In this document: piece after piece, positions 3,326 to 63,820 of the stretch | Layout: every line of letters starts with the position of its first letter | Position numbering within the stretch: the first letter of the stretch is position 1 | NCBI GenBank assembly: GCA_000320545.1 | Contig: ADNK01000260.1 | Location: 1 to 64,000 of the forward strand | From: Bigelowiella natans CCMP2755 | Lineage: Eukaryota; Protista; Cercozoa | DNA: 64,000 nt | Reading direction: 5' to 3' | Position numbers and translations under genes: made by a program | The notes under the pieces: generated by a model | Told to the model about the DNA's origin: nothing | The model's input: the letters and a program-made list of their open reading frames with translations, nothing else | Databases searched by the model: none

Positions 3326-4450
3326 TTTGACGTTCTCCTCCCTCGTGCTCTTTCGCTTTCTCCGAGGAGAGAAAAAGAAGAGCACTTGCTGCTGCTGCTG
3401 CTGCCCTGCCGAAAGAATCAAATCAATCAAATCAATCAAATCCATCCAAATCAAGAAAAATGGAACAATTCCATGCAATTTGCTACTACGACAACGGAAG
3501 CAACAGTGACCGGACTGCAAATCGCGAAGATTTTGCAGAACCGCTTCATTCATTCACCTTCGTACACTTTGGAAATGTAGTTCTTCATCATTGTTTCATT
3601 GTTTCATTGTTTCGTTCGCCTGGGCGGAAACCAGCGACCTTCTCGAAGTGCGTTGCCTGTTGTGTGTAGTTGCAGATGCACACACATGTTTCTGCGCAGA
3701 CAGATGCAGCACACATGACACAATCGTCATGCATTTGCATCACTGGAAGCACTTCACGTGCCAATTTCTTCGGCTAGTTTGATCGTTCATTCTGTTCGGC
3801 CGTGTGCACACACACTTGCACGTTCATTGTTGCACGCCTCACACACGTCACAAAGCGGTGACGCAAAGACGTTCACTGATGCCATGCTAGCATGCATGTG
3901 TGCCACCTTCCAGCCTTGCACATTCCACACACGTGCATGTTGGCTCAGCAGTCGTCATTGCTGCATCATGCCAGCATGCTGAACACCGCGTGCCGCCACA
4001 AAATGCATCTCTGGATGCAGCCACACTGGCACAAGCACGCTGACATGCGAGGATCAATGAGCCGAACCGAACTGATGCGATGAGCGGCACAGCATCATGA
4101 TCAAGTTGTTCCAAGTGTCTAGATGCATTTTTGCTAGCTAGCTAGTCTAGTATTGTTTCATGAAACTTCAGAATTTCGGCTGCACACGTGTGCCTGACAA
4201 ATACACGTAGGCACCACAACACACATCTAGACATGGGATGCAAGGAACATGCACATGGAGATGCCATGCTAGCATGATGGAACTTGATGGCAATTGCATG
4301 CTGGATGTAGTTGTGATGAACGACCATGTGTGGGACACAAGAATGGCACAGTTGCATTGCATCTATCGAGACTATGTCTGATTCGACAGGTTGTGCAATT
4401 TCTTGTTGTGTGCTTCAATTTGTTGCAGCCTCATAATTTCGCCCATTGCA
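3326..4450. other. TpA-depleted island with CTAG footprints (upstream of PTER)
   Basis: 3565-4150 has 9 TpA (7 CTAG, 2 GTAG) and none in other contexts. Footprints at 3883, 4223 and 4265; decayed forms at 3906, 3967 and 4022. Confidence 0.85.
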
Positions 4451-4749
4451 TCATATACCTATCAGAACATTATCAGCACGAAACCATGCAACCAATAGGG
4501 TTTCAGATTCATGCTCACAATGCCTAACGTACCAATTTAATGTGTGCTCTGATCTCCGAAGCCTTTTCTGTGAGCTTTTCTCCTTTCCTGAAGAAAATGA
4601 TACTAAGAGGTGTAAATGTCCGTCAGAAGTTGAATGATACCTTTTTAAATGTTCCTCTTTCTTTTTACAAAACTCAATAGCCTGTGAAAGTTGTATGATC
4701 GGGAGATATACTGTTTATAGGCTAGCATGGAGAACAATTAATTTTTTAG

Positions 4750-7700
4750 GGTGAAACGCCATCTCACCTCATCGAGAGTGAATTCTACGTGGAGGGTAAG
4801 ACCGACATCGACGACTATCCTGCTAGGATCTGGACTGTGGTAGTGAGAAACATTCATCAATGAATACTTTAATTCTCTCCAACCGTTTATGGTACTTACA
4901 CAACAGCCTGAGAGTAAAACTCCGAGCCTAGATTCACAAGAGATTCCAACTGAAGAGACAACACAAACGAAACAACTTTCGTAAGCACTGCATTCTAAAA
5001 GCAGGTTTGAACTTGAGCCACCTCTGTTTGCTTGCTTTCACGAACCACTGCAATATTGTTTCGGAGCTTGATGCTAGACAGGGGATGATGTTACAAATAC
5101 AATCGCAGCGAATGTTTGAGATGCTTACTATTCTGAGTGCTCATCAAAGATTTTGTCCCGCGCTTCTAGTACACTCTTTAAAGTTACTTTGAGCTTTGTT
5201 TCAACAATATTATGGAATCTGAGATACAGATCAGTTGCTTAGGTTTGGTTAAAGCTACATACACCAGTCTCAAATGCGAAACCTTTCGAGCTTGCTGTTC
5301 GGGGGGAATCCATGGTGGGATGGCCCTACTTAACCACAGCAATAAGAAGCACATTTTGACTAAAAAAGTAAAGTAGCTGGGAGATATACGATTTCATGGC
5401 AAAAACTGAATCTTGAGTATTGAACGTACCCTCCATGGTCGTCGCACTGATCTGTTCAGGTAGCTAATGGTGCTCCACTTTCCGTTCTATGAGTTATTTT
5501 CGAATAGTTTAAGAATATCTTGTTTGAATAGGGGCCAATGAGTATACTGTCCGTAAAAGAGAGTGAATGTTGAAGAGGATGATGTGGGAGATGCGTGTTA
5601 ACGACGAACACTTGCCTTGCCTCCACGTCCTGCCTCCTGCAGCTCTCGGAAGCGTCTAGTCCAACCCTACTTTCCCTGGGAAAATGCTAAATGGAGGGCA
5701 TTTTTCACGTATAATTACCGAAATGTGTTGTCGTTTACAAATAAAGGACATTTATTGAGCTCAAGTTGGAAGTGGGAAGAAGATCCACTCCACAATCCAC
5801 CCAGCAACGACACGCTTTTCTGACGAGGAGGAGGGAGAGAGAGAGAGGCTTACGTAATCTGTACACTAGCCACGGGTAAATGCCGCAGTAGTTCACTGTT
5901 GTAGCTTTTATACATATGTTCGTGCCATCAGAGGAAAGTATATCAGTGAAATCGCTCATACGCAAATCATCCTCTTCGGCGTCATTTCCGATAAAGCATC
6001 ACGATTTTTGTGTGATTTCTTCACTTATTTAACCCAGATTCACGAACCTAACTTCCCAACGAATGATATTTTTTGTCCGCAGGCTATTAGTTGGTTGGCT
6101 CGGCCATACCCAAGCTATTTCTCTCTTGTTCTTCTGCACATGATTATTCATAAAACATCGGTCGGTGCTGAGAAAGCATTCGGTCAAATTTGCAGCTACA
6201 GCTTAAGGGGAAATATATTTGATGCGAATGGAGAGGCACAACCATTTGAGGGCAAACTTAATCTTCCATGCTCCGTAGACTGTGGACAGGTTGCTTTTGA
6301 CATCAATCATCACCACCAACCCCACCACCATCACCATCACAATCCCCTTTCACACCTCGAGTGTTGTTTATTTGTGTTATTTTCAACGTACCATTAAAAT
6401 TGGTAATCGCAACATTATTGTCAAATAAACTCATTACCAACATCAATGTCTTCGTGGCAACCACCCTAAACACCTTATACTACGTATTTGTTCGCATAGG
6501 AGCCGTTTGTGTATCCGCTCGTAGGCCAGACTTTTAATCGTTCCTGTACAGTCGACGGAGCTCTTTGCCGCCGTTTCGATGCTCTAATGCTCGTACTCAC
6601 TGAGAGGTATACATTATCTTCTTGATATTAAAAAAAGTTATAATTGCATATAAGTGACCGTGCTAAAAATAGTGATAATAACATGGTAGTGTGTAATAAT
6701 TTGCATCCCCCGCCTTCACGCCACGATAAATAGGCCTACAGCCAGGCAAGAAACATATTTGCAATGGATTGGCAGCATATCTACCGATGATGGTCAATGG
6801 GGTGGTGTATATCATAGATTAAAGCACCACAGATTTCGTAGCAGTAGTACCAACAAGGAGGACGAAGATGCTAAGAATCAAAGTGGGAAACCTACTGAAG
6901 AAACATTGTTATCTCATGGGCATTTCTCCTGCCACTTCATACCAATGAATGATGGGAAGAGCCTCCCTTTCAGCGTGGTCACGTCAGTATCATCCGGGCT
7001 CCTTAATCGCTCAAAGATAGCAGAGGCATCAGCAGCAGCCGCAGATCATCACATCTCGGATCATCAGAATCTAACGTATGTAGTGGTAGTGGTAGTGGTA
7101 GTGGTAGTAGTAGTAGTAGTAGTGGTGGTGGTAGTAGTGGCGTGGTGGCGATTCTTTAAATATTTCATAGTGCTCTGAGGATGATGATGATGATGATGAT
7201 GATGATACGATTACTGCCGTACACAGGGTTGACAAAAGCGGCGCTGAAATGAATGAGAATGATCATGATTCGGATTCAGATTCGCTGAATTTCGAGGGAG
7301 GGGGATTAGATGCAGGAAATGGAGTTAGAGACAGCAGAACAAAAAGTACCAGTACTGCTGAAATCGGGGACAAATTTTCGTCCGTCGGACCAATTTCTAA
7401 TGGTGATGAAATTAGTGGTAGCGACAAGAAAGCTACTGCTGCTGCTGCTGCTAGTAGTGGCACTCATCGTGATGATGCTACTTCAACAACCCACCCCCCT
7501 CCTGTGGAAAATAGCAGTGAAAACCACGACGATGATGGGTACAATGACAAGCAGGACGCTCTCCACAGACCTGATGATGATGATAATGAAGAGGAGGAGG
7601 CAGTAGACGATGCCCGTGGCGATAACGATGACGACATGTTGTTTCAGTTTGATGAAGAGGTTGAGCAGGAGGAGAGGCGAATTCGACGATTTCGAAGAAT

Positions 7701-63450: not shown

Positions 63451-63589
63451 TTAAAAAAATTTACTTGCATTGGGTATTACATGAATCCACAGAGCGCGAA
63501 ATGCATGCTTAGAACCCTACCACCTGCCTAATAAAATGTACATAGAATCATGCACGATGTTTTACATTTTCTTTCATATAGCAATATAC

Positions 63590-63820
63590 AACAGTCACGG
63601 CCATGATGCACAATGTTTGCTAGCTGCACGTTTCAAATTTGCTCAAAAACCGCATGGTCTTCACATCATCATCTGATCGAGCGGAGCAAGGCTGCTTGTG
63701 TGTCTATGTGTGGCGGGCTGCGCTTTCGACCAGTTGTGTCAATTTCAAATTCAAAATGCATGTCTAGATGTCTTACAAACGACACCAAGGAGCGCGCATG
63801 CTTGCTAGCCTAGCATAAGA
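63590..63820. other. TpA-depleted island downstream of the HAD gene
   Basis: 63589-63773 has only CTAG/CTAT as TpA sites; atgt-CTAG-atgt at 63760. Confidence 0.7.

Follow-up and report, generated by a model that had tools for sequence, protein, structure and literature searches.

The stretch analyzed here, called the window throughout, comprises 64,000 nucleotides of the Bigelowiella natans CCMP2755 genome (contig ADNK01000260.1; G000:C3477:1-64000; parent assembly, 91.4 Mb), and its subject is a short recurrent signature in the spacers between genes, in which the tetranucleotide CTAG is enclosed by two copies of the same 4-nt word (N4-CTAG-N4). The window contains 245 CTAG sites, 36 of which have identical 4-mers on both sides; these are referred to below as perfect scars. 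CTAG-dense stretches, which add up to 9.3 kb, or 15% of the window, hold all 36, and six main islands hold 33 of them. The islands and the sites outside them are as follows.

3724..4322, unstranded: CTAG island with 4 perfect scars, at 3883 (CATG), 4134 (CTAG run), 4223 (ACAT), and 4265 (CATG)

25073..26098, unstranded: CTAG island with scars at 25387 (CAAG) and 25691 (TGCA) and, at 25543, the 12-bp variant TGTT-(CTAG)2-TGTT

36066..36923, unstranded: CTAG island with 5 perfect scars, at 36374 (CATG), 36503 (CGCT), 36555 (CTAG run), 36779 (ATTG), and 36866 (ATGG)

42403..42414, unstranded: isolated TTCA-CTAG-TTCA outside the main islands, in the open frame that precedes a kinesin motor domain

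47168..48459, unstranded: densest island, 38 CTAG sites and 7 perfect scars, including ACAC-(CTAG)2-ACAC at 47442 and CAGG-(CTAG)3-CAGG at 48235; downstream of a + strand kinesin gene

53565..54570, unstranded: island with 30 CTAG sites and 8 perfect scars, from a + strand CAP-domain gene to the 3′ end of a - strand gene (whose introns read CT..AC on the + strand)

53736..53749, unstranded: AGTAT-CTAG-AGTAT, an example of the minor class with a 5-bp duplication

56942..58003, unstranded: island with 24 CTAG sites and 7 perfect scars, in a head-to-tail spacer whose neighbors, both on the - strand, are the gene at 54429-56722 (5′ side facing the island) and the zinc-finger gene at 58082-59314 (3′ side facing it)

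61047..61058, unstranded: isolated ATGT-CTAG-ATGT

63760..63771, unstranded: isolated ATGT-CTAG-ATGT

The islands sit behind genes, though not solely between convergent pairs. RNA depth, taken from the raw reads of one run and from a second, assembled run of RNA type, was none at 53962-54423 and 0 to 0.12 at 56734-57811. The isolated TTCA site at 42403 could have arisen by chance, as 0.5 such sites are expected outside the islands. At the edge of the last island, a period-9 tandem repeat made of CCAAGCTA-type units (56955-56990) runs directly into two CTAG scars.

The excess of N4-CTAG-N4 in the window is real and was confirmed in several ways. First, dinucleotide-preserving shuffles of the whole window (n = 200) gave a mean of 0.8 perfect sites and a maximum of 5, compared to the 36 observed. 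Second, after microsatellite-like words were dropped, 27 of the 36 sites remained, compared to 9 for the runner-up central 4-mer. Third, the repeat length around CTAG peaked sharply, with 6 sites at 3 bp, 36 at 4 bp, and 2 at 5 bp. Finally, the signature is not an assembly artifact because the region 53839-57841 was recovered by two independent 2025 Illumina assemblies with one substitution and zero gaps. Enrichment over shuffles and over other central 4-mers, proposed as a check in the initial annotation of this DNA, is thus present. That annotation had named 30 sites. All 30 are present, 26 as simple N4-CTAG-N4 and 4 with (CTAG)n between the repeats; n is 2 for TGTT at 25543 and ACAC at 47442 and 3 for CAGG at 48235, and CCCT at 57218 holds (CTAG)3-CTAC-CTAG. 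The TTCA site at 42403 and nine sites whose flank is CTAG itself were absent from that list. Its figure of roughly a third of island CTAG sites fitting the pattern was too high, the value being 36 of 163 (22%) by the island mask used here. As separate observations on the 2025 DNA runs, position 57281 is the one place in 4.6 kb where both runs differ from the reference, by a fixed G>C change, and the contigs of these runs break at an (AT)n tract (57842-57915).

Such an excess might in principle be reached with no insertion process at all, either through a selected signal (a terminator, boundary, or modification site) or through CTAG/CATG-rich composition combined with replication slippage. The islands do have an unusual composition in line with this. 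In a 350-kb sample (0.4% of the genome), made up of the window plus two stretches of 100 kb each from other contigs, together with 29 short loci, the island CpA/TpG ratio was 1.43 to 1.45, GpC was 1.66, and CC/GG was 0.65, and the 4-mers CATG, TGCA, AGCT, and GCGC were over-represented 2.2- to 2.6-fold. TpA outside CTAG was depleted no more strongly in islands than elsewhere. However, shuffles confined to the CTAG-rich islands, which keep this composition, averaged 0.26 perfect sites and never exceeded 2, compared to 36, and the unusual composition derives partly from the scars themselves. Together with the varied flanks and with the paralogue comparisons and run lengths given below, this makes an origin without insertion the least probable of the explanations considered, and we regard it as highly improbable.

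The signature is abundant well beyond the window. The 350-kb sample holds 199 nonrepetitive perfect scars, and every other central 4-mer reaches 43 at most. Genome-wide, CATG-CTAG-CATG (CATGCTAGCATG) occurs 3,828 times, compared to 7 for its reversed control and 9 for the control CATGGATCCATG. Since CATG is the flank of ~14% of the scars in the sample, these 3,828 sites extrapolate to an estimated ~27,000 perfect scars in the genome.

Further analysis of the flanks showed a fixed duplication length and a defined target. Duplications of 4 bp were found at 199 sites compared to 5.7 expected and those of 5 bp at 13 compared to 1.5, whereas 3-bp repeats (27 compared to 22) showed no excess. The 4-bp and 5-bp classes make up ~94% and ~5% of cases, respectively. 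The reconstructed target is two-fold symmetric from -6 to +6 and reads C|(C/A)NN(G/T)|G, with C at -1 in 42%, C or A as the first duplicated base in 89%, G or T as the last in 89%, and G at +1 in 37%; CATG is the favorite target. This differs from the initial annotation, which had described the target duplication as largely sequence-independent. The symmetry and the fixed duplication point to a symmetric dimeric enzyme that makes a precise staggered cut.

One enzyme with these properties is topoisomerase II (Top2). Trapped Top2 could leave 4-bp 5′-staggered breaks behind genes, the places at which supercoils gather, and fill-in and end joining, with an extra step that supplies CTAG, would then produce the scars. 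The 4-bp stagger, the symmetric site (C preceding the cut and G following), and the location behind genes all fit, and Top2-dependent de novo duplications of 2 to 4 bp are documented in yeast and in human tumors (10.1101/2020.05.03.075358; PMC8795545). The duplications of yeast top2 mutants and of human TOP2A K743N likewise involve a symmetric enzyme, a 4-bp stagger, fill-in, and end joining. However, the documented events are plain tandem duplications to which nothing has been added, whereas CTAG is always inserted here, and Top2 chemistry offers no constant CTAG; the scars do not belong with these events. In addition, bare 4-bp duplications of the preferred type occur at 0.85 per kb in islands compared to 0.52 per kb, whereas CTAG scars reach ~4 to 5 per kb, and bare 4-bp tandem duplications are only 1.6-fold enriched in islands, similar to 5-bp ones. 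Top2-type damage is thus a very improbable source.

Copies of a repeated element that lacks the motif offer a direct view of the sites before insertion. Two such copies lie in the island at 53565..54570.

53747..53890, - strand: young, 5′-truncated copy of a high-copy non-LTR retroelement family; a clock and a source of empty sites, separate from the scar process

53907..53994, - strand: older, diverged copy of the retroelement 3′ end, with two filled scar sites

Read depth marks 53747-53940 as a very high-copy repeat, the 3′ end of a non-LTR retroelement. This family is young, with at least 1,449 candidate matches genome-wide and 98 to 99% identity for the best copies. One end of the copies is constant (...CATTACATCCGTCTCA on the element strand), and the 5′ end is variably truncated. 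The target duplications of the retroelement measure 6 to 17 bp and lie mostly at TATA-like sites within the scar-bearing spacers. In the older copy, positions 53942-53953 read AATG[CTAGAATG] and positions 53983-53994 read AGCT[CTAGAGCT], whereas AATG and AGCT each occur just once in the family consensus, to which the copy was compared by eye. A further example, in another, young copy of the retroelement, is ATGG-CTAG-ATGG at L023:1649-1660 (G000:C3558), where 13 paralogues in a 16-copy alignment have a single ATGG. Set against the 13 empty paralogues, this filled site is a genuine insertion of 8 bp that took place recently. By these comparisons, the motif arises when 8 bp are inserted at a site that until then had the 4-mer once and lacked CTAG, as the initial annotation had proposed, and at least one such insertion postdates a retroelement burst whose copies differ by only a few percent. 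A clean gain of 8 bp is also not what a selected signal or slippage would give. As an observation on the retroelement itself, many RNA reads gain poly(A) right after ...CAATGGTCA (53790 and 53939), antisense to the element, and dispersed copies seem to supply polyadenylation sites to many transcripts.

The insert itself is nearly invariant, being exactly CTAG in ~97 to 98% of the scars. CATG-flanked (CTAG)n occurs genome-wide 3,828, 76, 60, and 6 times for n = 1, 2, 3, and 4, respectively, and (CTAG)n runs counted irrespective of their flanks number 1079, 34, 31, and 3. Neither set is the length series that slippage by single units would give, and microsatellite slippage was therefore rejected. 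The excess of n = 3 over n = 4 is expected if 8-bp insertions also enter CTAG as a target, which fits the target rule, and is not expected from slippage. Stripping scars out iteratively uncovered just 2 nested scars per 64- to 100-kb sequence. Sites of the form CATG-CTAG-N(1-19)-CTAG-CATG number 326 genome-wide, and ~54% of them are second hits on a duplicated CATG, a share that agrees with a chance of ~5% for any island CATG to be hit.

Rare inserts are informative about how the scars are made. Between CATG flanks, CTAGCTAG was found 76 times genome-wide (control, 0) and CTATAG 29 times (control, 1), and neither can be produced by a further 8-bp insertion. Flanked inserts in the 350-kb sample included CTATAG (3/37), CTAAG or CTTAG (5 compared to 1.2 expected), and CTACTAG or CTAGTAG (3 compared to 0.2 expected). 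An unbiased ranking of longer enriched inserts was dominated by coding repeats and retroelement copies. The variants CTATAG, CTAGCTAG, CTAAG/CTTAG, and CTACTAG each consist of a CTAG prefix joined to a CTAG suffix, and the set as a whole would fit two inverted ends beginning 5′-CTAG that were variably processed before joining. This argues against an alternative raised in the initial annotation, the addition of a fixed 4-bp oligonucleotide at staggered breaks. The element with CT...AG termini that the same annotation proposed gains from the variants, which read as remnants of inverted ends, with its termini extended to CTAG...CTAG.

What was observed directly is an 8-bp insertion that includes a duplication, enters a symmetric target, yields a spectrum of products, and has occurred recently. 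The explanation we favor, and consider probable, is that the scars are excision footprints of a cut-and-paste transposon that ends in CTAG and duplicates 4 bp of its target. Each N4-CTAG-N4 would represent one cycle of insertion and excision of a DDE-type DNA transposon whose inverted termini start with 5′-CTAG. A symmetric transposase dimer would cut near C|(C/A)NN(G/T)|G with a stagger of 4 bp (rarely 5 bp), and repair would copy the staggered 4 bp to give the target duplication. Excision would then leave a few terminal nucleotides of either end on the flanks, as in Tc1 and Sleeping Beauty. The two 4-nt CTAG overhangs, being self-complementary, would anneal and ligate without processing, and this would explain why ~97 to 98% of the scars are exactly CTAG; a nonoverlapping join would give CTAGCTAG, and trimming of one base per side would give CTATAG. 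The build-up of scars in untranscribed spacers behind genes may reflect targeting or the loss of insertions elsewhere. The transposon, its termini, and the overhang chemistry are the parts of this model that we infer.

The age of the scars sets the rate that such an element would need. Scars with 0, 1, and 2 mismatches between their 4-mers numbered ~231, 94, and 15 in the 350-kb sample after background subtraction, corresponding to ~5% divergence per site, and decayed centers were mostly CCAG and CTGG, i.e., transitions at TpA. From this divergence and the base-substitution rate of 3.46e-10 from a published mutation-accumulation experiment on B. natans, we estimate a time span for the scars on the order of 1e8 generations and a low long-term rate of ~1e-4 events per genome per generation. 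A single mobile copy, or a few, wandering at an ordinary hopping rate would be enough for the scar load over such a span, and so low a copy number would account for the lack of a visible donor. The very high frequency of cycling suggested in the initial annotation is not needed to account for the density and age of the scars.

Several results weigh against a transposon of this kind. First, the donor was not found. In a scan for elements with CT...AG ends, the same 4-bp duplication on both sides, and inverted repeats that agree at 10/12 or 12/14 positions, a check proposed in the initial annotation, matches were at chance level both in the window and in the 350-kb sample. The candidate at 62074-62458 (AATG duplication, 11/12 inverted repeat) was rejected as single-copy, coding-like gene DNA. 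Pairs of CTAG with identical outward flanks 16 to 2,000 bp apart numbered 24 after filtering compared to ~44 expected and had no common ends in the 350-kb sample, and the 326 genome-wide CATG-CTAG-N(1-19)-CTAG-CATG sites, as candidates for retained ends, had no recurrent internal sequence. Second, no transposase stood out. The DDE_3 profile gave 0 matches in the genome, as did DDE_Tnp_1_7 (piggyBac), for which the control genomes likewise gave 0 in that search, and Pfam revealed no transposase among 20 long open frames taken from two other contigs and the window. To our knowledge, no superfamily combines CTAG termini with a nonspecific 4-bp duplication. Elements of the Harbinger, hAT, and IS4/5 types have duplication lengths that do not fit 4 bp. 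The transposase domains annotated in B. natans are of these types (preprint Table S7). Third, CTATAG and, less plausibly, CTAGCTAG could stem from small duplications after insertion. Finally, current activity was not seen. Over 4.6 kb, two DNA runs showed no polymorphic 8-bp indel at the scars, the sort of evidence that the initial annotation suggested looking for in reads. In the mutation-accumulation experiment, which ran for 3,132 generations with 85 Mb of sequence callable and yielded 21 de novo indels (preprint, 10.64898/2026.01.13.699255), an N4+CTAG insertion was found in 0 of the 21, with ~0.4 expected, a result that neither supports nor refutes current activity.

In the same experiment, 7 of 15 de novo insertions end in ACA (GACA, CAACA, ACA, ACACA, two 11-mers ending in AACA, and CATTACA), and one further insertion is TGTG, the reverse complement of CACA (10.64898/2026.01.13.699255, Table S2). 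These look like the products of a biased insertion process distinct from the CTAG scars.

A donor that is not found leaves room for enzymes that write the scar directly, with no resident element. A dimeric nuclease, an integrase, or a domesticated transposase, encoded by the host or by a virus, might make a 4-bp staggered break to which short CTAG-ended DNA is joined on both sides (e.g., separated fragments of transposon or viral ends, or abortive integration), and repair would leave CTAG. The extreme uniformity of the scars, the lack of a donor in the 350-kb searches and at the 326 genome-wide sites, and the symmetric target, which suits any dimeric enzyme, are all consistent with this, and the genome holds many intact rve integrase genes. 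However, the minor products retain 2, 3, or 4 letters per CTAG end, as expected from two real ends and not from a fixed oligonucleotide, and a source of CTAG-ended DNA would still be required. We know of no enzyme activity of this kind and consider this particular scheme unlikely. Taken more broadly, a transposon-free, undescribed enzymatic process that cuts untranscribed spacers with a 4-bp stagger and reseals them with the palindrome CTAG is marginally easier to accept, though still doubtful.

The rve profile matched 38 places in the genome. About 20 of these are copies of an rve-integrase-bearing element with an intact 1,489-codon frame, one of them on the contig of the window (G000:C3477:136397-136684), and eight rve integrase frames of 373 to 379 codons stand alone as a second group.

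If the scars are excision footprints, their closest analogue is the Tc1/mariner group (Tc1, Tc3, Sleeping Beauty, and Minos). In both, a duplication is followed by a few inverted-end nucleotides and a second copy of the duplication, and a single canonical product dominates, with rare variants that carry more or less of each end. Minos leaves its own 4 terminal nucleotides. Nevertheless, the scars fall outside Tc1/mariner, where the duplication is TA, whereas here it is 4 bp and variable. Furthermore, the retained ends are self-complementary here (CTAG) and the scar is nearly invariant, in a genome without DDE_3 that carries tens of thousands of scars and no visible element. The excision footprint of Sleeping Beauty is TAG(T/A)CTA (PMC2874221). 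PiggyBac shares with the proposed element the 4-bp target duplication and repair through annealing of complementary 4-nt overhangs, but it needs TTAA and excises scar-free, whereas the targets here are varied and CTAG remains, so the scars are not of the piggyBac type. Sola, Ginger, Chapaev, and some Academ elements belong to superfamilies reported with 4-bp duplications. The likeness is in target duplication length, and none of the four is known to us with CTAG termini. Among these groups, the profile searches covered Ginger, through the rve domain.

No published description of the N4-CTAG-N4 signature, or of its reading as a footprint or as a directly written mark, was found in the literature. 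The sole clear orthologue contig for the kinesin gene, from a metagenome protist with a GC-rich compact genome, is without scars and uninformative. On a separate contig (G000:C3123), neighboring 417-codon frames at L035:8012-9262 and L036:7701-8951 are matches to LtrA (low temperature requirement A), a bacterial family, apparently a tandem pair of a bacterial-type gene in an algal nuclear genome.

Tens of thousands of near-identical scars without a visible culprit are unusual for any genome. If the footprint explanation is true, B. natans preserves the record of a DNA transposon that has wandered through it for a long time at very low copy number. This transposon would be of an undescribed type that ends in CTAG, duplicates 4 bp, excises almost without a scar through self-annealing, and strongly favors untranscribed spacers behind genes. 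Much of the palindrome-rich spacer DNA would then be a by-product of transposition and not regulatory code. If instead the scars are written directly by an enzyme, they would represent a new kind of DNA-modifying activity. The scars themselves are dense, datable neutral markers for the comparison of strains.

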